Assembly (NCBI GenBank): GCA_964036045.1
Contig: OZ038379.1
Coordinates: 43,276,001-43,340,000 of the forward strand
Reading direction: 5' to 3'
Length of the DNA stretch: 64,000 nucleotides
Origin: Eutreptiella sp. 'Long Island Sound 2002'
Taxonomy: Eukaryota > Protista > Euglenida
The notes beneath the pieces are model-generated. The model saw only the letters and a list, made by a program, of their open reading frames with translations. It searched no databases and was not told where the DNA came from. Position numbers and translations under genes: made by a program. Positions 1 through 30,724 of this stretch are shown piece by piece (the stretch's first letter is position 1; each line of letters begins with the position of its first letter).

Positions 1-205
1 CTTTGTGTGATTGTACTTCACACCCATAGGTATCATCCACCAAAATATCACCCAAATCTGAAGCACCACGACGGAAATCTGATTTTTACCCATTTCGCGC
101 GTGCTGCTGCTTGCTGCTTGCTGCTGCTTGCTGCTGCTTGCTGCTGCTGCTGCTAAACTGGTAGGTCCACCCTAGACACTAAAAAGGGTGACCCTAGCCC
201 TAACC
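1..205 (+). mobile_element. Telomere-repeat-flanked element, 3' part of copy 1 (window-truncated, small internal deletion)
   Basis: Matches 3533-3767: a (CTGCTTG/CTG)n tract, then CCCTAGCCCTAACC. It lacks the ~32-bp segment TTATAAAACCAAGACTGGTTCCACCAGCTCAG. Confidence 0.75.
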
Positions 206-2589
206 TTTGCATCACCATTGCGTGCGCCGCCTTTGGATCTGCAATTTGTGAACCGGTCGCGGACCTCCATTGTGTGCACTGGCTTCCGATCTACATTGTG
301 CAAACCCGCCTTGGATCTCCATTGTGTGCAGCGGCTTTAGATCTCAATTCTGTGAACCGGCTTCGGATTCCCATTGTGTGAACCGGTTTTGGATTTGCAT
401 TGTATGAACCGGCTTTGGATCTCCATTGTCTAAACCGGCTTTGCATCTCCATTGTGTGAAGCGGCTTTGGATCTCCATTTTGTGAACGGGCTTGAGATCT
501 CCATTGTGTGAACCGGGCTTGAATCACCATTGAGTGAACCGGATTTGTAACTCCATTTTGTGAAACCCCTTTGGAACTCCATTGTGTGTAATGGCTTTGC
601 ATCTCTATTGGCTAAATCAGCCTTGGATTTGCATTGTGGGAACAGGCTTCGGAACTCCATTGTGTGAACCAGCTTTGGATCTCCATTGTGTGTATTAGCT
701 TTGGATGTCTGTTGTGTGAACCGGCCTTGCATCTCCATTGAGTGAACCGGCTTTGGATCTCCATTGTGTGAAGCGGCCTTCAATCTCCATTCTGTGCACC
801 GCCTTTAGATCTCCATTATGTGAACCGCCTTTGGATCTCCATAGTGTGAACCGACCTTGAATCTCCATTGTGTGAACCGCCTTTGGATCTCCATTATGTG
901 AACCGGCTTTCGATCTCCATTGTGTGAACCGGCCTTGAATCTCCATTGTGTGAACCGCCTTTGGATCTCCATTTTGTGAATCGATTGTCTGAACTAGCTT
1001 TGGATCTCCATTCTAGGAACCGGCTTTGGATCTCCATTGTGTGAACCGGCTTTGGTCCCCCATTGTCTGACCCGCCTTTGAATCTCCATTAGCTCAACCG
1101 GCCTTTTAATTCGCATTGTGTGAACCAGCTTCGGATCCACTTTGTGTGAACCGCACTTTGGATGTCCATTCTGTTAACCGGCCTTGGATCTTCATTGTGA
1201 GAACGGGGTTTCGATCTCCATTGTGTGCACTGGCTTCGCATCTGCATTTTGTGAATGGTCCTTGGATCTCCATTGTGTGCACCGGCTTTGGATCTCTATT
1301 GTCCGAAGCAGATTTGGATCTCCATTGTGTGAACCGACTTCGGATCCCCATTGTGTGAACTGGCTTCGGATCTGCATTGTGTGAACTGGCTTTGGAGCGG
1401 CATTGTGTACACCGGCTTTGGATCTCCATTGTGTGAAGCGGCCTTGGATCTCCATTGTGCGAACCAGCCTACAATCTCCATTGTGCCAATCGAGTTTGGA
1501 TGTCCATTGTGTGAACCGGCTTTGGTCCCCCATTGTGTGACCCGCCTTTGAATCTCCATTGGCTGAATCGGCCTTGGATCTACGTTGTGTGAACCGGCTT
1601 GGGATCCACTTTGTGTGGACCGCTCTTTGGATTTTGCATTGTGTTCTCCGGCCTTGGATCTCCGTTGTGTGAACCGGCATTGGATCTCCCTTGTGTGCAT
1701 TGGATTCGGATCTGCATTATGTTAACCCGCCTTGGATCTGCGTTGTGTGCAACGGCTTTGGATCTCCATTCTGTGCACCGGCTTTGGATCTCCATTATGT
1801 GAACCGGCCTTGAATCTCCATTGTGTGACACGGCCTTCGATCTCCATTATGTGAACCGGCTTTGCATCTCCCTTGTGTGAACCGGCGTTGAATCTGCATT
1901 GTTTGAACCGCCTTCCGATCTCCATTGTGTGAACCGCCTTTCGATCTCCAGTGTGTGAACCGGCTTTGCTTCTCCATTGTGTGAACCGGCCTTGGATACG
2001 CATCGTGTGACCCGGCTTCGAATCGCCATTCTGTGAACCGTCTTTGGATTTGCATTGTGTGAACCGGCTTTGGATCTCCATTGTGTGAACCGGCTTCGGA
2101 TCTCCATTGTCCGAACCGGCCTGCAATCTCCATTGTGTCAATGAACTTTGGATTTTTGGATTGTCCGAATCTGCTTTGGTCCCCCATTGTGTGACCCGGC
2201 GTTAAATCTCCATTGGCTGATTCGGCCTTGGATCTGCATTGTGTGAACCCGCTTCGGATCCACTTTTTGTGGACCTCTCTTTGCATTTCCATTGTATTAT
2301 CCGGCCTTGAATCTCCTTTGTGTGAACCGTCTTCGGCTCTCCATTGTGTGCAGTGGCTTCAGATCTGCATTATGTGAACCCGCCCAGGATCTCTAGTGTG
2401 TGCAACGGCTTTGGATCTCGATTGTGTGACGCAGATTGGGATCTCCATTGTGTGAACCGGCTTTGGATCCCCATTATGTGTACCGGCTTTGGATCTGCAT
2501 TGTGTGAACCGGCTTTGGATCTCCATTGTCTGAAGCGGCTTTGCATCTCCATTTTTTGCACCGGCTTTGGATCTCCATTGTCTGAACGT

Positions 2590-3767
2590 CCCTAACCCTA
2601 ACCCTAACCCTAATCAAGACTGAATATTGGGACCGAGCTGGTGGGGGAGGGAACATTAGATATGAATGGTGAGGGACATCAAGAATGATTCACACATTGA
2701 TGGCTCTTGACAAAGTGAAATGCACCTGAACCCCATCACCACGAGGCCCACTTTCAAGGCTTTTTGGACTTCTGAGGGGCCAAAATGCCCCAAAATGGGC
2801 TCAAAATGGGCTCATTTCACCCTTTTGTGCACCCCAAATGGTCTACGATGAGTTTTGAAAAAATGTGTTTTTGACCCATTTTTGACCCATTTTTGGTCCC
2901 AAAACAGCCCATTTTCAAGGCATTTTGGGATTTTTGGAGGACCCAAATGGGCCACCACAAGCTCAAAACAGTCCAAAAACACTTGTTTTAGCGTCGCACA
3001 TGGTCTAGGATCATTTTTGCGGAAAGTCATATTTTTACCCCTTTCGGACCCTGTTGACCCATTTGGGTACCCACCTGTTTGGGCTTGAGCTTGCAGCTTG
3101 CCACAGCCTAGTGGGCCTAGTTATTGGGGTCTAGGCGTCCGTTTGGGCAATTCTGAGGGGTGGAAACCACAAAACGTGGGGGGTTGCGGGTGGAGTAGGT
3201 GCCCTCGGAATCGCATTTTGAGCCATGTAGCCAAAGATATGGCCTATTCTTGGTTTGTGGCTATCGGCAGTTGGAGCTTCTGGGGGCCTTTTTGGGCCGT
3301 TTCCGGGACATATCATGGAGTTAGAGGGCCGCAAAGAGCTCGTTGACACGGGGAAGTCAAGCGGCACGTGGAGTGTACCCACCGTTTCCCTTCGCTTGGC
3401 CGTTTTGAATGTGTTCCAGGGCATTTTTGGCCCAAAAATATCTGTTTTTGGCCCTAAACTGCAGTTTCTGAAACTGAGGTCCGCCACTTGCGAATCCCGT
3501 TCCCGGCCGCCACCGTTGAGTTTCTTGCTCAAACTTTGTGTGATTGTACTGCACACCCATAGGTATCATCCACCAAAATTTCACCCGAATCTGAAGCACC
3601 ACGACGGAAATCTGATTTTTACCCATTTCGCGCGCGCTGCTGCTTGCTGCTTGCTGCTGCTTGCTGCTGCTGCTGCTAAACCTGGTAGGTCGACCCTAGA
3701 CACTAAAAAGGGTTATAAAACCAAGACTGGTTCCACCAGCTCAGTGACCCTAACCCTAGCCCTAACC
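2590..3767 (+). mobile_element. 1.18-kb non-coding element flanked by telomeric repeats, copy 2
   Basis: Starts with (CCCTAA)4 at 2590-2613 followed by TCAAGACTGAATATTGGG, has a (CTGCTTG)n tract at about 3636-3676, and ends CCCTAACCCTAGCCCTAACC at 3748-3767. It interrupts a satellite monomer. Mobility is inferred from the dispersed copy at 63.3 kb. Confidence 0.75.
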
Positions 3768-6176
3768 TTTGCATCACCATTGCGTGCGCCGCCTTTGGAT
3801 GTGCAATTTGTGAAGCGGTCACGGACCTCCATTGTGTGCACTGGCTTCCGATCTACATTGTGCAAACCCGCCTTGGATCTCCATTGTGTGCAGCGGCTTT
3901 AGATCTCAATTCTGTGAACCGGCTTCGGATCCCCATTGTGTGAACCGGCTTCGGATCCCCATTGTGTGAACCGGCTTTGGATTTGCATTGTAAGAACCGG
4001 CTTTGGATCTCCATTGTCTAAACCGGCTTTGCATCTCCATTGTGTGAAGCGGCTTTGGATCTCCATTTTGTGAACGGGCTTGGGATCTCCATTGTGTGAA
4101 CCGGGCTTGAATCACCATTGAGTGAACCGGATTTTTAACTCCATTTTGTGAAACCCCTTTGGAACTCCATTGTGTGTAATGGCTTTGCATCTCTATTGGC
4201 TAAATCGGCCTTGGATTTGCATTGTGGGAACAGGCTTCGGAACTCCATTGTGTGAACGAGCTTTGGATCTCCATTGTGTGTATTGGCTTTGGATGTCTGT
4301 TGTGTGAACCGGCCTTGCATCTCCATTGCGTGAACCGGCTTTGGATCTCCATTGTGTGAAGCGGCCTTCAATCTCCATTCTGTGCACCGCCTTTAGATCT
4401 TCATTATGTGAACCGCCTTTGGATCTCCATAGTGTGAACCGACCTTGGATCTCCAATGTGTGAACCGGCCTTGGATCTCCATTATGTGAACCGGCTTTGG
4501 ATCTCCATTGTGTGAACCGGCCTTGAATCTCCATTGTGTGAACCGCCTTTGGATCTCCATTTTGTGAACCGATTGTCTGAACTAGCTTTGGATCTCCATT
4601 CTGGGAACCGGCTTCGGATCTCCATTGTGTGAACCGGCTTTGGTCCCCCATTGTCTGACCCGGCCTTGAATCTCCATTAGCTCAACCGGCCTTGGAATTC
4701 GCATTGTGTGAACCAGCTTCGGATCCACTTTGTGTGAACCGCACTTTGGGTGTCCATTCTGTTAACCGGCCTTGGATCTTCATTGTGAGAACGGGGTTTC
4801 GATCTCCATTGTGTGCACTAGCTTCGCATCTGCATTTTGTGAATGGTCCTTGGATCTCCATTGTGTGCACCGGCTTTGGATCTCTATTGTCCGAAGCATA
4901 TTTGGATCTCCATTGTGTGAACCGACTTCGGATCCCCATTGTGTGAACTGGCTTCGGATCTGCATTGTGTGAACCGGCTTTGGAGCGGCATTGTGTACAC
5001 CAGCTTTGGATCTCCATTGTGTGAAGCGGCCTTGGATTTCCATTGTGCGAACCAGCCTACAATCTCCATTGTGCCAATCGAGTTTGGATGTCCATTGTGT
5101 GACTGGCTTTGGTCCCCCATTGAGTGACCCGCCTTTGAATCTCCATTGGCTGAATCGGCCTTGGATCTATGGTGTGTGAACCGGCTTGGGATCCACTTTG
5201 TGTGGACCGCTCTTTGGATTTTGCACTGTGATATCCGGCCTTGGATCTCCGTTGTGTGAACCGGCATTGGATCTCCCTTGTGTGCATTGGATTCGGATCT
5301 GCATTATGTTAACCCGCCTTGGATCTGCGTTGTGTGCAACGGCTTTGGATCTCCATTCTGTGCACCGGCTTTGGATCTCCATTATGTGAACCGGCCTTGA
5401 ATCTCCATTGTGTGACACGGCCTTCGATCTCCATTATGTGAACCGGCTTTGCATCTCCCTTGTGTGAACCGGCGTTGAATCTGCATTGTTTGAACCGCCT
5501 TCCGATCTCCATTGTGTGAACCGCCTTTCGATCTCCAGTGTGTGAACCGGCTTTGCTTCTCCATTGTGTGAACCGGCCTTGGATACGCATCGTGTGACCC
5601 GGCTTCGAATCGCCATTCTGTGAACCGTCTTTGGATTTGCATTGTGTGAACCGGCTTTGGATCTCCATTGTGTGAACCGGCTTCGGATCTCCATTGTCCG
5701 AACCGGCCTGCAATCTCCATTGTGTCAATGAACTTTGGATTTTTGGATTGTCCGAATCTGCTTTGGTCCCCCATTGTGTGACCCGGCGTTAAATCTCCAT
5801 TGGCTGATTCGGCCTTGGATCTGCATTGTGTGAACCCGCTTCGGATCCACTTTTTGTGGACCTCTCTTTGCATTTCCATTGTATTATCCGGCCTTGAATC
5901 TCCTTTGTGTGAACCGTCTTCGGCTCTCCATTGTGTGCAGTGGCTTCAGATCTGCATTATGTGAACCCGCCCAGGATCTCTAGTGTGTGCAACGGCTTTG
6001 GATCTCGATTGTGTGACGCAGATTGGGATCTCCATTGTGTGAACCGGCTTTGGATCCCCATTATGTGTACCGGCTTTGGATCTGCATTGTGTGAACCGGC
6101 TTTGGATCTCCATTGTCTGAAGCGGCTTTGCATCTCCATTTTTTGCACCGGCTTTGGATCTCCATTGTCTGAACGT

Positions 6177-7354
6177 CCCTAACCCTAACCCTAACCCTAA
6201 TCAAGACTGAATATTGGGACCGAGCTGGTGGGGGAGGGAACATTAGATATGAATGGTGAGGGACATCAAGAATGATTCACACATTGATGGCTCTTGACAA
6301 AGTGAAATGCACCTGAACCCCATCACCACGAGGCCCACTTTCAAGGCTTTTTGGACTTCTGAGGGGCCAAAATGCCCCAAAATGGGCTCAAAATGGGCTC
6401 ATTTCACCCTTTTGTGCACCCCAAATGGTCTACGATGAGTTTTGAAAAAATGTGTTTTTGACCCATTTTTGACCCATTTTTGGTCCCAAAACAGCCCATT
6501 TTCAAGGCATTTTGGGATTTTTGGAGGACCCAAATGGGCCACCACAAGCTCAAAACAGTCCAAAAACACTTGTTTTAGCGTCGCACATGGTCTAGGGTCA
6601 TTTTTGCGGAAAGTCATATTTTTACCCCTTTCGGACCCTGTTGACCCATTTGGGTACCCACCTGTTTGGGCTTGAGCTTGCAGCTTGCCACAGCCTAGTG
6701 GGCCTAGATATTGGGGTCTAGGCGTCCGTTTGGGCAATTCTGAGGGGTGGAAACCACAAAACGTGGGGGGTTGCGGGTGGAGTAGGTGCCCTCGGAATCG
6801 CATTTTGAGCCATGTAGCCAAAGATATGGCCTATTCTTGGTTTGTGGCTATCGGCAGTTGGAGCTTCTGGGGGCCTTTTTGGGACGTTTCCGGGACATAT
6901 CATGGAGTTAGAGGGCCGCAAAGAGCTCGTTGACACGGGGAAGTCAAGCGGCACGTGGAGTGTACCCACCGTTTCCCTTCGCTTGGCCGTTTTGAATGTG
7001 TTCCAGGGCATTTTTGGCCCAAAAATATCTGTTTTTGGCCCTAAACTGCAGTTTCTGAAACTGAGGTCCGCCACTTGCGAATCCCGTTCCCGGCCGCCAC
7101 CGTTGAGTTTCTTGCTCAAACTTTGTGTGATTGTACTTCACACCCATAGGTATCATCCACCAAAATTTCACCCGAATCTGAAGCACCACGACGGAAATCT
7201 GATTTTTACCCATTTCGCGCGCGCTGCTGCTTGCTGCTTGCTGCTGCTTGCTGCTGCTGCTGCTAAACCTGGTAGGTCGACCCTAGACACTAAAAAGGGT
7301 TATAAAACCAAGACTGGTTCCACCAGCTCAGTGACCCTAACCCTAGCCCTAACC
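6177..7354 (+). mobile_element. 1.18-kb telomere-repeat-flanked element, copy 3
   Basis: Near-identical to 2590-3767 at offset 3587. Confidence 0.75.
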
Positions 7355-8259
7355 TTTGCATCACCATTGCGTGCGCCGCCTTTGGATGTGCAATTTGTGA
7401 AGCGGTCACGGACCTCAATTGTGTGCACTGGCTTCCGATCTACATTGTGCAAACCCGCCTTGGATCTCCATTGTGTGCAGCGGCTTTAGATCTCAATTCT
7501 GTGAACCGGCTTCGGATCCCCATTGTGTGAACCGGCTTCGGATCCCCATTGTGTGAACCGGCTTTGGATTTGCATTGTAAGAACCGGCTTTGGATCTCCA
7601 TTGTCTAAACCGGCTTTGCATCTCCATTGTGTGAAGCGGCTTTGGATCTCCATTTTGTGAACGGGCTTGGGATCTCCATTGTGTGAACCGGGCTTGAATC
7701 ACCATTGAGTGAACCGGATTTTTAACTCCATTTTGTGAAACCCCTTTGGAACTCCATTGTGTGTAATGGCTTTGCATCTCTATTGGCTAAATCGGCCTTG
7801 GATTTGCATTGTGGGAACAGGCTTCGGAACTCCATTGTGTGAACCAGCTTTGGATCTCCATTGTGTGTATTGGCTTTGGATGTCTGTTGTGTGAACCGGC
7901 CTTGCATCTCCATTGCGTGAACCGGCTTTGGATCTCCATTGTGTGAAGCGGCCTTCAATCTCCATTCTGTGCACCGCCTTTAGATCTTCATTATGTGAAC
8001 CGCCTTTGGATCTCCATAGTGTGAACCGACCTTGGATCTCCAATGTGTGAACCGGCCTTGGATCTCCATTATGTGAACCGGCTTTGGATCTCCATTGTGT
8101 GAACCGGCCTTGAATCTCCATTGTGTGAACCGCCTTTGGATCTCCATTTTGTGAACCGATTGTCTGAACTAGCTTTGGATCTCCATTCTGGGAACCGGCT
8201 TCGGATCTCCATTGTGTGAACCGGTTTGGTCCCCCATTGTCTGACCCGGCCTTGAATCT

Positions 8260-24554: not shown

Positions 24555-25814
24555 GGACCCTTCCCCCCCTGCGCTTCTCTCTCTCTCTCTCTCTCTATAT
24601 ATGTCCGTGGTTTGTGACAAGGGGAAGGGACACTATTTGTTGGCCAGTGGGTATTGGCATAACCTGTTTTGCATGCACGGTTACTAAGAACACTGCACCG
24701 ACCATGCGTCGGTGACCGGGTCTCACTTGCGGGGAGTTAGAGCTGACCCAAGGCAACCCAAGAGAGATTTGATAGCCTTTGGGCGAACTTAAGGCAACAT
24801 TCATTACTGCTGTGAAAGTGCTTGAGTGCCGCAAAACAATCACGAGCTATGACCGGTCACGGTGCGTCTCGTTAGCTTTGTTTGTGTGCGCGCTTGGAGG
24901 TGCCTGACGGAAAAGGTGCTGGGTTTGGGTCAACGAAGCCCCCCCCCCCCTTCGGAGGGGGGTGAGGCCCCCCCCCCCCCCCTGTAGCCCCCAAAACTGT
25001 CGAACACCCCTCGGGGTCACACATTGGCTGGCGGCGGCCCCCGTGATCACGGGTCGTGATACCCTATTGGGTGTCCTCCTACCTTTTCATACGGACCTAG
25101 GCTATCTTGTCATTCAACCATATGTTCGAGCAGCACCTCACACTGAGGTCCACAAACCAAAGCTGCCATTTTTGGCCAAAATACCCCCGCCCCCCACTCC
25201 TTCAAGCTAGACCGGAATGGGCTTTCAACGTGCCAACTTGGTACATTTATCATGCCTCTAGGCCCAAAGTGTTGGATATGCTTGGTTGACAGCCCATTGA
25301 ACCCCAATACTAAAATTGTAAGCCCCATGCCAGGAAACGCCTCATTTGCAGGCTGTGGTGAAAAAATACCAAGAACACACCCAAAAAGCTGGCAAACCTA
25401 GGTTCCAACATTGGCATGTTTTGCGTGGAGTTTAGCCATGCCAAATCGGCACTGTCCCTATGTACCATGTGGGATATGTAGACCCAAAGATTTGAGTACT
25501 AGATTTGGAGATGGCAGCTTGGTGAAGCACCAAGGGGAGGGTGTCAAGCCCAACCAATGACCATTTTTTGCCACCTCTGTGCCTTTGATACACATTTAAT
25601 TGAAAGGCTAGAGGTTCCATCTTCGGTGATTTCCACATCATCTTGGGGGTACGAACCAGACATCCTAAAGTGCCGGCCCGCACCCGGGATAGGCAGTTTC
25701 ACCGGCGCAGAAAAATGACCACAAACCCCCAGTAGTTCAGTAGATTTCAAAAGACAATAGTTTTTGACCACTACAGTTTTTTGAAATCGAATTTTTAGGC
25801 CCCAACGGGCCAAG

Positions 25815-28800
25815 GTTTCACTGTCAACAGTGAAACTCGAGGTGAAAGGCCACATTATATGACACTTTGGGCCGTACCCAACCCCTCCCACTTGTCTACA
25901 ACCCCGCCTTGGGTGCTGGTGGTCGTTCATTTGGGTGTGGTGGAGTATGCACGGACCCAAGTGAGGTTAACAGTGCAAGGTAGTTTCACTGTCAACAATG
26001 AAACTACTTTGCTCTGGAAGAATTGTGATGATACCTCCAAGTCCAGGTGGAGTACCTGTTTTACTACCCGGGCTAGGAGTTTGGTGTTTCACCACTTGGT
26101 CACCAATCTACCAAACATGTCTAAAAACTACGAGTTTGGTAGTGCTAGATGAGTACCCCCTTCTCAGCGGGGCACTTGCCATGCCCAGTGGGTGACCAGG
26201 TGGTGGTGCGGTATGCCACCTGGTGGCTAGGTGGGGGACGTAGCGGGATTCGAACCCAGCCCCACTGGGACAAGACGAGGTGGTTATCTACTGGACCACA
26301 CGACGGTCCGGTGATGTTTCCGATTCTGTTTTTTGCAGCCTTTTTCAAAAACATATTTCTTTTTACTCGTTTTTCCTGCTTATCCATGAACACCATATTA
26401 TGGGAAACAATTTCACCGTTAATAGTGAAGCTGTTTGAGGCCTCATACTCACTTACTTTGTCATCTCATCCTCCCAGGCCACGTTATCACACGTAGTTTC
26501 ACCGTCAACAGTGAAACTACTTTTGGTCATCAAGTACATACGGTAAGTTCCTGCAGCTATGTGCCTTTGTGCTTCCTTGTGGTTCTGCCGTGGTGGGGGG
26601 ACAACAGGGTGCCAGTGGAGGATGTTATTGCAGTTGTACCCCCCCCCTTTGTGCCACCATTCCATGTGTTGTTCTCCTGCCTTTCAAGTGGTTGGCTTCC
26701 ACAGCACCGAAGCACTGAGACTTTCACTGTCAACAGTGAAACCAACTGCCACCACTCCTCGTTAGTAGCACGTGGCTTATTGCACCCTGTGCACAAGTTC
26801 TGCTATTCTGCCTACTCACACCTGTCCACGATGGAGTTTCAATGTCAACAGTGAAACCACTGGTTGCCGTCTGCTTGTTCTGTCTGTATGTAATCCGCCT
26901 GTACTGCCTCAGAGGGCACAGTGACTGGCAACAGTGCCTCCCCATTCCGACTGCGAGAGATTTGGTCGGGGTTGTATGACGTCGTGGATCGGGGTGAGCT
27001 ATATCAAGACGGGGACTCATTGGTGGAATGCGCTCTGGGAGGAGTAGTAGCTTTTCCTTTTCTGGAGGTGGCTCCGGAGTTGCGTTTGAATCCTCGAACA
27101 AGACGAAGTATTGCAGATCTGAAGCAGGGCTGGCCGAGTCGTGGGTCCTAGCAATGGCTTCTGCGCTCTGTGCCCGCTCTGTTTAAGCTCCTCCGCCGCA
27201 TGCTGGTAGTCGCAAAGCCGATGATAGTGGCAAAAACGGTACCCAATGCAAGGGCCATGACAACACCAACCAAGAAACAACGGCTTGAGTTGCAGGGAAG
27301 TGGTTTTGCACTCTTCGAGAAACTACCTTTGGCCAACCGAGTTCCTTTTGCAAAAGAGAGGATCCGCCAAGAAATGACACAAGGATGATGTGACATGGGC
27401 ACACCAATTTTGCAACAGCCTCCATTTCATAGCAGCCCACGGGGAGCAAAGAGGTGCCAGAAGTGGGAGAAAAGCAGCCCCAAACCGTACAAAGCTGCAT
27501 GACCCAGGCACCTCCTCTAATGGGGTTTCACTCTCAACATTCAAAGTGTGCTGCAGGCGATTCGGTTCAAAGGACCATTTGCCTTTGGTTGTCACTGGAG
27601 CATTAGTTTTGGTGTTTCACTATCACACAAGATGCTGGGTTCACCTTATTTTGGCTGATTTCAATTTGCTGATTTTGTTGTTGTACACAAGACACAAGGC
27701 CACTAATAGTTCTTAAAACTAACATTGTGTACATTGATGCTGCAACATAATGCTTCCTGCTCCTCATTTACTTGTAGTGGTTCCTTCTGCCAAGGGATGC
27801 ACAATAAAGACGGAAATCAATTGTGCACCGTTCTTTATGGCCAAACCCTACCATGAATCATATCATGCTAGCCCTTTTTGAATGTGCGGTACATGGACGG
27901 ACACACACACAAAAGGCAAGAGGAATCAAAGAGAATGGTGTGAAGGCTGATAATGAACACAGGCAAGGACACCAGCATCAGAAGCTCCTTGACACCCTGT
28001 TGCCCGGCACCAGCATTCCAAAAAACTGGACTCTCCAAGCAGTTTTCACTGTTGACATTGAAGCTGTCTGCCTGGAAGCTACCTCATCCCCTGCTGTCGA
28101 TTCTGTGGTTCATGTGCCCCCAACTGTCCTCCAACTTGCCTTCAATGCCGTTAGTGTCGATGCAAAGCCAGCTCCTGCGAAGGCAACAAGGAACAAGAGG
28201 GGGAAGGCCAAGCCCCTTGCCAAGGCAAGTGCCAAGCGGCCGAAGGAGCAAACTACCCTCACTCAGATGGACCTAGAGAATGACGTGGATTTCCACAGCA
28301 TTGGTAAGGGACAGTAGCAAGCAATTGCAGCGCAGAGTGAGGACGCGAACAACGTGGGATCCGGCGGACAAGGAGCCCCCGGGGGTCAAGCGGAAACCCA
28401 AAGTCTCCGCCGTGACCATCCCCAGTGTGGCTCAGCCTGAGCAAGCTCCCCGGAGGACCCGCAGTGCAAAGCAGTAGGCTGGATGGGAGGACCTATCAGT
28501 TGTGCTTTTTTTAGAACTGCTTCAGGTTGTACTGTTGTTGCCCTGACAACGTCTGCGGGTTTGCTGGGTTATCACACTATAATTTCCCTGTCAACTGTGA
28601 AACACACTGCCATAATGACACCTGTGCCCAAAACGCCTGAAACCAGTGTCAGATTTTTTCTTGTCACTGCACTGCTCTGTGATGACCTACTGCACAGATA
28701 TGGTGCGGAACTCCACTATGTGCTTTCGTTTTTCAACAGACAGGAACAATCATTTATAAACCATAATTTGTACCCTTCAATCTCTGTCTTGGACTGCACG

Positions 28801-29174
28801 GACATATGACACTGCCCCTGTGTATTTGCACAGTACTTCATTGCAGGAGTCACCTACTGTTTGTCCTCAATGTCAGTTTCACCAACAGGCCCATATATCT
28901 GCTGTATTGTTTCCACGCTGCACCTCGGATACACTCGTTTGTAACAGGGGGAAGTTGTTCGTGCCTGCACCGGCTCCATAGCCGCACATGGGAAGGAATG
29001 GAGGGGGGGCGGGGTTCTGGGGATACAATCCATCACTCCTCAATGGTTCTATGTCAGCTGCTGTTTCACTATTGACAGTGAAACATCATCAAATATGGCC
29101 CCCACAGTGCAGTTTTGGGAAATTGAATTTTTATGTTAGTTTCACCGTTGGCCACACAGGCCAACAGTGAAACT
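25815..29174. repeat. Dispersed 22-bp palindrome GTTTCACTGT-CA-ACAGTGAAAC, about 11 copies with irregular unique spacers
   Basis: Copies start at 25815 (perfect), 25983, 26410, 26496, 26721, 26836, 27525, 28043 (reversed core), 28582 and 29063 (reversed core). There is also an expanded 16-bp-stem hairpin at 29138-29174 and partial copies near 25694 and 28876. Confidence 0.9.
26234..26304 (-). pseudogene. Degenerate tRNA-derived sequence (tRNA pseudogene or SINE head)
   Basis: The minus strand reads GTCGTG-TGGTCCAGTAG (A-box-like) ... CTGGGTTCGAATCCCG (B-box/T-loop) with tRNA-like spacing. Acceptor and anticodon stems pair poorly, so no isotype is assigned. Confidence 0.5.
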
Positions 29175-30724
29175 TTTTGCTTGTTTTCGGGGTACCCGTC
29201 GGCCCGGGATGTCATGTTCGTACCCCCAAGATCATTTCTCCTCCCAATGAGCTAGAAACTCTCCCGTGTTACTTTTGGAGCCTCCCGAGGTAAGTGCACT
29301 AGATGTTTGAAAGCGGCCAAATTATGCTGTATCGGGTCAACCGGCCACTTAAAAGCCACTCCAAGAGTGGCACTACTACTACTACTACAGTACGACTACA
29401 ATTACTGCTGCAGTAATATTCGGTTCCACCCCTATGACCCGTTTGAACCGTAAAGGCAGTCCCGTGTTGGGTTCACTTGGCACGTTGGACGAGAGAAGCG
29501 CACCAATGTACGCGCCAACGAGAAGCCACTATTCGTGAAGTGCTGTTGCGTCGGCAAGGTATGAGCATTCTTTGGCATAGGTTCAGGGTGCAAAGGCGTG
29601 TGAGGGGGGAAGGGGGATTGGGTCGAGTGTTGCGGGTGTTTTTTGCGTGAGGGGCACATGTCGATGATAGGTTCTTTGTTTTTTTTTGGGGGGGGGAAGA
29701 TGCCATGTTCCCCCAACATTAGTCGACACAGTTGCGACCCTCCAACCACCTCTGCATCGCATGAATCGACCTTTGGGAGGGGGGGGGGCGCATTGATTGA
29801 AACAACCACCATCCACCAACGAGGGCTGCACGGTCCATTGTGAGGTTGGGAGAGCCTAAGGTCCAGGGGTTTTAGGAGCATGTTCTAGGCTCACGCAAGG
29901 TCACGGCAAGGTCACCGACACTCGTTGCAAGTGCAGTTTTGTTGTAGTAGTGCAAGCGTGCCCTGCAAGTTCACCAAACGCTCAATCAACTCTTATGGAA
30001 GGCGCATGATATTCTAGTGTGCGTTTGATGAGCTTGCTCTTCACCAAGAGTGAAGTGAGCGTTCAATTTACGCTAGGGCTTGGACCAGCACCAACTGCTG
30101 CAGCTCATTTGTACACCGTGATGAGTGTAGTAGCGTGGGGAGAGGTTGAGTTATCTGGCCTACAACGCTAGGGTTGAGGCCGCAAAACAAAAATGTACAC
30201 CTTGAAGGGTGTAGTGAGGCCAAAACATAGGGGAATGGCATGGAGGCACGGAATGGTAGTTCACAACACCTATCACTACATGGTTCACCACTCCCATGTG
30301 CCCTTCGACCCTTCCCAGGGCTTGGGGAAATACACCTTTGCATGGAGTGGTTTACCACATGTTCCTCGCATTTGGTATGTTTTTCGGATAGGCATGAAGA
30401 CATATGGCATCCCACAACGCTCACTAAACGCCAGTTTAAGGCCCCATATTGTGCAATGAGTATTGTGGGAGTTCGTGAGTCTTTCCATGAAGGACAGCAC
30501 CGCACATAGCACGACCAGTGCACCTTGGGGGAGCGCCATTGGCCAACTTGGCAGTTGGAGGATTTGTGCTGTACCCATGGTTGCGGGATGTGCGGCTGGG
30601 AACACGACTACTACCCCGCGTGCAGTGCAGGGGCACACGACTTCTCGCATGACAGTGGGGGTCATTAAGGGACAGTCTTTTTTGAGGATTTTTTGAGGAT
30701 ATCCTTTATGGACCGTCCCAAGGG

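Follow-up and report, generated by a model that had tools for sequence, protein, structure and literature searches.

An old non-autonomous DNA transposon in the euglenid Eutreptiella carries lineage-private palindromes predicted to be binding sites for an element-encoded protein

A 64,000-nucleotide stretch of the genome of Eutreptiella sp. 'Long Island Sound 2002' (assembly GCA_964036045.1, 2.28 Gb in 2317 contigs; contig OZ038379.1, positions 43,276,001 to 43,340,000 of the forward strand), here called the window and numbered from its first letter, contains at 25642-29230 an old, non-coding, non-autonomous deletion derivative of an 8.3-kb, two-gene DNA transposon. The element is bounded by 24-bp terminal inverted repeats (TIRs), the left at 25642-25665 on the plus strand (beginning CTTGGGGGTACGAAC, also given as CTTGGGGG) and the right, placed by comparing genomic copies of the end, at 29207-29230 on the minus strand; its termini read 5'-CTTGG..CCAAG-3'. 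Comparison of the flanks identifies a target site duplication (TSD), ATCAT, at 25637-25641 and again at 29231-29235. The original prediction, made from the letters of the window alone, had described 26-bp inverted repeats spanning 25640-29232. The inverted repeats stand, but the two outermost base pairs belong to the TSD: the end sequence has 156 genomic matches with at most 3 mismatches (0 for the control), and the two bases preceding CTTGG differ between these copies, which sets the limits of the element at 25642 and 29230. TSDs, which the prediction had proposed to look for, are also found across the family. Of the 25 copies with both ends, about 20 have 5-bp flanks that match perfectly, with a sequence that differs from copy to copy, and in most of the other copies the flanks differ at a single base.

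Between these ends the element is studded with a 22-bp palindrome of consensus GTTTCACTGT-CA-ACAGTGAAAC, that is, two 10-bp arms around a 2-bp core. A scan of the 64 kb allowing up to 3 mismatches finds eight sites, and the same scan of 100 shuffled sequences finds none. Six have a CA core: those at 25815-25836 (perfect), 25983-26004, 26721-26742 and 26836-26857 (1 mismatch each) and 28582-28603 (3 mismatches) are on the plus strand, and the sixth, at 26496, lies within a segment (26029-26518) that is inverted relative to the autonomous element. The two right-hand sites at 28043-28064 (plus strand, inside the remnant of an accessory gene described below) and 29063-29084 (minus strand, 1 mismatch) have a TG core, just as had been read from the letters. 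Two decayed copies, at 26410 (5 mismatches, also within the inverted segment) and 27525-27546 (4 mismatches, plus strand), are detected only as members of the repeat family. A long-stem variant occupies the right subterminal region; first described as a 16-bp-stem hairpin at 29138, it is real and conserved in the autonomous copy L030, but its span is 29139-29173, its arms are 15 bp long and contain one mismatch, and its loop is 5 nt. Half-sites reading GTTTCAC, also anticipated inward of each inverted repeat, lie near both tips: on the left GTTTCACC at 25696-25703 (plus strand), 55 bp from the tip, a position likewise occupied in L030, and on the right the outer arm of the long-stem variant, 58 bp from the tip.

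The array of eight strong sites, two decayed ones and the long-stem variant therefore bears out the original description of it, including its restriction to the cassette, since no further copy at up to 3 mismatches occurs in the window outside 25815-29084, and the lack of relatedness among the spacers, which repeat comparison confirms. Genome-wide, with 2 mismatches allowed, the 22-mer is matched about 1300 times in each orientation and its reversed control 4 and 23 times, and a scan of this kind, suggested with the prediction, shows the matches concentrated within elements. We reject the idea that the palindrome is an independent micro-element, because its positions are inherited along with the surrounding segments. 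Across family copies the core dinucleotide is CA at 187 sites, TG at 97 and TA at 43. A CG core occurs at 0 of 331 family sites, and deamination of a CpG at the centre would give either CA or TG; one may speculate that the 'asymmetric core' is the decayed CpG of a once-perfect palindrome. Separately, a 29-nt motif (83% alike) is present in direct orientation at 25769-25797 and 29105-29133, about 100-130 bp inside the two ends, and is also seen in L030.

The window element is one of some 40 or more copies. Used as a query, the whole cassette matches 87 dispersed genomic segments, the best of them 85-91% identical and collinear. The closest siblings (89-91% identical) are collinear with it over cassette positions 1-3290, after which about 157 bp present in the siblings is lost from the window copy and the alignment resumes to the right end. 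Copies of this 3.8-kb family are mosaics of autonomous-element segments, two of them inverted. The segment at 26029-26518 (minus strand) is 75% identical to positions 444-935 of the autonomous element and is inverted in every 3.8-kb copy, the homology turning inverted just past the palindrome at 25983-26004. The segment at 26719-27420 (plus strand; 80% identical to 1104-1806 of the autonomous element at locus L005) is a remnant of the region upstream of the transposase gene together with about its first 175 codons, now broken, and the segment at 28010-28576 (plus strand; 78% identical to 6987-7553 of the L005 element) is what remains of the 3' portion of the second, accessory gene. Nothing longer than a 164-aa (amino acid) open reading frame (ORF) remains. 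The window copy retains 9-10 sites against 12 in its siblings: in siblings L010-L015 the counterpart of the site at 25983-26004 is followed, 40 bp on, by a duplicate in the form of a 30-bp extended palindrome, and another site lies close to the right end; the window copy has lost both. A tRNA-like stretch at 26236-26310 (minus strand, with a T-arm-like GGTTCGAATCC) lies inside the inverted segment; ARAGORN and Rfam make no call on it, and tRNA and RNA-family scans of the cassette returned no match.

Following clusters of the palindrome elsewhere in the genome revealed elements of 7.8-8.4 kb that share the ends of the window copy and contain 17-18 palindromes. These are the autonomous relatives that the original prediction had advised looking for. 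The complete autonomous copy at L030 is 8,323 bp long, is flanked by the TSD AGGAA and contains an uninterrupted, intronless ORF of 754 aa. The statement that no cognate enzyme is encoded here thus holds for the window copy but not for its family, whose 8.3-kb members encode a transposase. TIRs, a TSD of fixed length and variable sequence, and transposase-encoding relatives with the same ends are the features of a non-autonomous class II TIR element. Together with the dispersed copies, the shortness of the ORFs, the DDE fold of the transposase and the selection on the palindrome in the transposing lineage (both discussed below), they support the suggestion, made with the first description, of a non-autonomous element with internal protein-binding sites.

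Autonomous copies vary in several further ways. Nested retroelements with reverse transcriptase, RNase H and integrase matches interrupt two of them (L004:3670-7605 and L003:4668-6077). A 42-bp unit with a single palindrome is repeated in tandem to different extents, from one copy to three (L005 element, 4861-4924; L002 element, 4262-4361; L001 element, 4865); in L002 three palindromes stand close together in this region, and in L030 the open frame runs through two palindromes of the unit. An initial pass over the source genome registered 6,789 candidate loci of the transposase superfamily, many with open frames of 600-840 aa.

The 754-aa protein has no sequence-level name. Pfam assigns no family to it or to any ORF of the 8.3-kb elements or their relatives, a sequence search of the PDB gives no match, a word-indexed protein search with the transposase profile returned only the source genome's own copies, and scans of viral and Joint Genome Institute (JGI) metagenome contigs with transposase motifs found no relatives. 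An exhaustive HMMER search, by contrast with these, reaches 812 cluster representatives at E <=1e-3, 118 of them at E <=1e-30. All 20 of the relatives that were looked up come from metagenomes or raw-read assemblies, and the few that are named are called 'hypothetical protein'. Forty full-length relatives, about 25% identical and with zero Pfam matches among them, have D162, D247, E500, E501 and E504 among their invariant residues. The AlphaFold model of the protein is confident (predicted local distance difference test score, pLDDT, 85; predicted template-modelling score, pTM, 0.79), and its best structural match is the P-element transposase (Z 9.2 over 320 residues), followed by Hermes (Z 7.7), Tn5 (6.9), retroviral integrases (about 6), Transib (5.8) and RAG1 (5.2); Foldseek recovers the same set, weakly. 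On the strength of these matches the modelled protein is an RNase-H-fold, presumably catalytic DDE transposase with a large helical insertion.

Several ORFs lie downstream of the transposase gene in the full-length elements, and one encodes a domain with the pattern Y.LGGQH...TPL..AG.HQ..Q. Most lineages conserve this second gene beside that of the transposase: the domain is encoded there in metagenome relatives L035-L040 and, within the source genome, in lineages L042-L044, L046, L048 and L049, all of which, like the family of the window element, carry palindromes of their own. In L036 the domain forms the N-terminus of a 722-aa protein whose middle weakly matches the next large ORF of the 8.3-kb element. 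Since this one protein spans both pieces, the accessory gene in the family of the window element is probably one long gene split into exons. By eye only, the Y.LGGQH...A pattern resembles a ParB/sulfiredoxin-like domain.

Palindromes are not peculiar to this one family, but their sequences are. Each of the eight metagenome contigs that extend far enough beyond the gene has a different 18-22-bp palindrome (shuffles yield at most 1), and five further lineages of the source genome each have one of distinct sequence; a ninth metagenome contig (L007, 2.5 kb, with about 150-200 bp of flank per side) has no repeated palindrome and is too short to judge. Counted by exact arms, a relative has 2-13 copies, the richest reaching 9-13 with degenerate copies. 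Examples are AAAACGACGGATCCGTCGTTTT in L035, CAACGGGATCGATCCCGTTG in L037 and CTGGCCGAAATTTCGGCCAG in L049, the last in nine copies. The centre of the palindrome is 0-6 bp long in other lineages and variable. Two of the metagenome relatives, L036 and L037, also terminate in CTTGGGG, and the outermost 80 bp at either tip of L036 contain three half-sites. Some sites precede the transposase gene, others are intergenic, and others again are embedded in coding sequence, in frame; the in-frame site in the transposase reads FTVDSET and falls in a low-confidence loop of the model. Six sites precede the transposase ORF in the 8.3-kb family, the divergent region that separates the accessory and transposase genes of L037 and L038 is taken up by groups of 3-4 sites, and several sites in L035 lie within about 100 bp of stop codons.

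Comparison of the gene-less families with the autonomous element shows that the palindromes have been under selection. Between families, palindrome columns are 92-93% identical while their 100-bp flanks have drifted to 76-82%. Within families, where differences are taken to postdate insertion, the palindromes have decayed no differently from the remaining columns (2.2 vs 2.9%, 1.7 vs 1.3% and 2.0 vs 2.0%). Conservation between families combined with equal decay within them points to selection during the element's own life cycle, gene-less copies included: as judged from these alignments, the sites are preserved while lineages transpose, and neither later upkeep by the host nor biased mutation accounts for them. 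Sites are also packed more densely in deletion derivatives, at one per 256-316 bp against one per 460-495 bp in autonomous elements.

We propose, at a probability of roughly 0.7, that the window element is an old non-autonomous transposon copy whose palindromes, private to each lineage, are predicted to be bound by a dimeric, sequence-specific DNA-binding protein that the element family encodes; full-length elements would make this protein, which most likely docks at the sites. On this proposal, proteins of full-length elements would have inserted the window copy, producing the ATCAT duplication, and the copy would now be immobile. The two 10-bp half-sites around a loosely constrained 2-bp spacer would be read by a dimer, and the palindrome sequence would co-evolve with its reader. 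Half-sites by the tips and full sites across the body may mark the DNA as belonging to the machinery's own family, and gene-less copies would keep the sites if they need them in cis for mobilisation or protection. The binding could serve assembly of a transposition complex, anti-silencing or copy control. In addition, deletions occasionally break at the sites, as one old inversion did. As to which protein reads them, the accessory protein has a little under an even chance, and the transposase itself is a somewhat weaker candidate.

Several results pull the other way. In full-length elements many sites are found at the edges of genes or ahead of the transposase ORF, positions that would also fit promoter or operator signals, and the estimate of 92-93% conservation between families has some ascertainment bias, because BLAST seeds form more easily on conserved palindromes. 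The accessory protein, a candidate reader, showed no ParB or other fold in these tests: a model from 7 sequences has a pLDDT of 45 and a best structural Z of 3.3, and the several ORFs over which its gene is split in the source genome, searched singly, have no Pfam or PDB match.

The first of these points leads to the strongest competing explanation, that the palindromes are expression signals of the full-length element, for instance bidirectional promoters, operators or terminators recognised by a factor of the host or of the element, and that gene-less copies keep them only through inheritance of the segments. The site clusters in the divergent regions of L037 and L038, the sites close to stop codons in L035 and the six sites ahead of the transposase ORF in the 8.3-kb family are what such signals would look like. 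Yet families that express nothing have kept the sites while the flanks drifted, and are enriched in sites per kb; selection on a gene-less element can act only on its needs in cis, which favours mobilisation or protection over gene expression as the role of the sites. Half-sites right beside the tips and sites in frame inside coding sequence are likewise awkward for expression signals, and we consider this explanation unlikely.

Considerably less probable still is a purely structural role, in which the palindromes fold into hairpins or cruciforms, need no protein of their own and, for example, prime repair or replication or are just fragile sites spread by duplication. The perfect 10-bp arms and the 15-bp stem at the right end could form such structures, some breakpoints fall at or near palindrome centres (L031 and L033), and the palindrome-bearing 42-bp unit varies from 1 to 3 copies among autonomous elements. 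However, structure alone would accept any stable hairpin, while each lineage keeps one exact sequence at all its sites and other lineages keep another, which argues for sequence-specific reading; and the lone half-sites near the tips cannot form hairpins.

The breakpoints bear more directly on an idea raised in the original prediction, that the cassette is an integron- or shufflon-like array of unrelated fragments joined at recombination sites with a directional CA/TG core. If segments were inserted, excised or flipped by a site-specific recombinase, borders should be found at palindromes, and some are: a 620-bp segment inverted between subfamilies has its left border against a palindrome, the junction of a 3.7-kb deletion in L031 coincides with the centre of a palindrome and shows a microhomology of 3 bp, the truncation of L033 falls within a palindrome, and two small deletions remove the spacer between neighbouring sites. 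Six of 18 breakpoints lie within 10 bp of a site, where 9% would be expected (p = 0.004). Counted by event the excess is no longer significant (4 of 12, p = 0.14), two thirds of breakpoints are elsewhere, and the second border of the inversion is not at a palindrome. Nor do segments vary in order or orientation between copies: siblings are collinear over 3.3 kb, the strings of site orientations are identical among copies of famA and among copies of famB, and those of autonomous copies differ only by the presence or absence of one site. Fixed orientations imply that nothing is flipping now. The core, being CA, TG or TA here and of variable length and sequence in relatives, behaves as a loose spacer and not as a directional crossover dinucleotide. 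The sole recognisable enzyme in these elements has a DDE fold, and none of the ORFs tested in the 8.3-kb elements or their relatives matches a Pfam recombinase family, tyrosine or serine. We therefore reject the integron or shufflon array, and crossover at the palindromes by any site-specific recombinase seems hardly credible. Every site repeats all the others in both direct and inverted orientation, and sequences so related are expected to be mildly prone to breakage or template switching, as these palindromes are.

Returning to the binding-site proposal and the transposon that underlies it, the transposase belongs to an unnamed superfamily, lacking the defining features of the three groups considered. 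The CMCT clade, which comprises EnSpm/CACTA, Mirage, Chapaev, Transib and Plavaka, has 5'-CA..TG-3' termini and TSDs of 2-5 bp (PMC12730594). The 5-bp TSD falls within that range, but the termini here are 5'-CTTGG..CCAAG-3' and the clade's CxxC is absent from the invariant and nearly invariant columns of the 40-sequence alignment, and we reject membership on these two grounds. The alignment does contain a partly conserved WHxYKH, whose second H is lost in the family of the window element. Within the hAT superfamily, hAT5 has 5-bp TSDs; hAT membership is nevertheless rejected, as none of the 40 relatives has a Pfam match to the hAT dimerisation or BED domains and the fold similarity to Hermes reaches a Z of only 7.7. 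A P-element affiliation is rejected because the TSD is 5 bp and not 7-8 bp and there is no THAP match, even though the P-element transposase is the best structural match (Z 9.2). The look-alikes found with a protein language model are DUF6589 clusters (0.92-0.94), and the Pfam model of DUF6589 (PF20231) scores at best 15 bits (E 0.011), in one copy only and below its curated cut-off of 27 bits; we take DUF6589 as a lead to a distant relative, not as a family to which the transposase belongs.

The 5-bp TSD itself is established for the family of the window element only, since it could not be confirmed at the putative ends of the L042/L043 lineage or of metagenome contigs L036 and L037. When L042:2462-8234 is compared with L043:1706-7421, the DNA outside the putative CTTGGGG ends is similar between the two loci and there is no 5-bp duplication; the real ends may lie farther out, or the element may sit in another repeat.

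These results show that in a large, unnamed group of transposons (812 protein clusters, no Pfam family, no solved relative) a lineage-specific palindrome is kept as a selected part, by gene-less passengers as well as by full-length elements. They provide annotation for a big fraction of a 2.28-Gb genome, with more than 6,000 candidate transposase loci, and raise the question of how each of many related transposon lineages sharing a genome manages to recognise its own DNA alone. Should palindromes and binders vary together between lineages, they would form a natural set of orthogonal protein-DNA recognition pairs. A bolder version, which we hold only tentatively and think has clearly less than an even chance, is that this is an undescribed, widespread eukaryotic DDE superfamily, with 5-bp TSDs and CTTGGGG tips, in which each lineage's private palindrome, placed at intervals of a few hundred bases along the element and even within codons, acts as a 'bar code' and a predicted, element-encoded ParB-like protein loads on the sites to mark full-length and gene-less copies alike as self. 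Such self-marking would serve complex assembly or escape from silencing, and would let many lineages coexist in one genome without cross-talk.

Several known systems share parts of this arrangement. Integron attC and shufflon sfx sites are also imperfect palindromes between unrelated DNA segments, but the elements described here have no tyrosine recombinase, a constant segment order and an unconserved core. CACTA elements (through TNPA), Ac/Ds and P elements have subterminal transposase-binding repeats, needed in cis, in their terminal 100-300 bp. The short motifs near both tips of our elements, beside the TIRs and retained by non-autonomous copies, are comparable; in those systems, however, the motifs are terminal only, whereas full palindromes here recur about every 460 bp throughout. 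Bacterial ParB reads multiple palindromic parS sites as a dimer, which parallels the many copies of a palindromic site and the dimeric reader predicted here. The outer 7 bp of each arm (GTTTCAC / GTGAAAC) equal the parS half-sites. In our elements, though, the half-sites are 8 bp farther apart, and no ParA-like gene was recognised among the ORFs tested (no Pfam match). Other lineages use palindromes of unrelated sequence, so the resemblance to parS may be due to chance.

Two eukaryotic systems come closer. In Arabidopsis, the VANDAL anti-silencing protein VANC reportedly binds short, family-specific repeated motifs and causes loss of DNA methylation, as described by Hosaka and colleagues in 2017. 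VANDAL elements thus resemble those described here in having an element-encoded sequence-specific binder (predicted in our case) and motifs that are repeated within a family and differ between families. The VANC motifs are short direct repeats in the non-coding DNA of Mutator-like elements and not 22-bp palindromes, and the function of VANC is demonstrated, while our case is built from sequence. Red-algal Plavaka and other transposons carry PAG3, a protein with a ParB-like N-terminal domain and a 2-oxoglutarate (2OG) oxygenase, together with inverted-repeat arrays; Petroll et al. propose that the accessory protein binds its own element, and VANDAL/VANC is the only system that they name with known self-binding (Petroll et al. 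2025, bioRxiv 10.1101/2025.02.11.637652). A ParB-like/methyltransferase gene is likewise carried by Sola1-1_Ec32 of Ectocarpus (PMC12477816). Like the elements in Eutreptiella, the PAG3 and Sola1 systems combine a eukaryotic DNA transposon and its transposase with an accessory protein and element-specific inverted repeats. They differ in that their repeats form tandem arrays adjoining the accessory gene, in 17-21-kb elements of the EnSpm/Plavaka, Sola1, Zisupton and Mutator groups. The transposase described here is of another, unnamed kind, the likeness of its accessory partner to ParB is one seen by eye, and single palindromes are scattered over the whole 8.3 kb, through coding sequence and gene-less derivatives alike.

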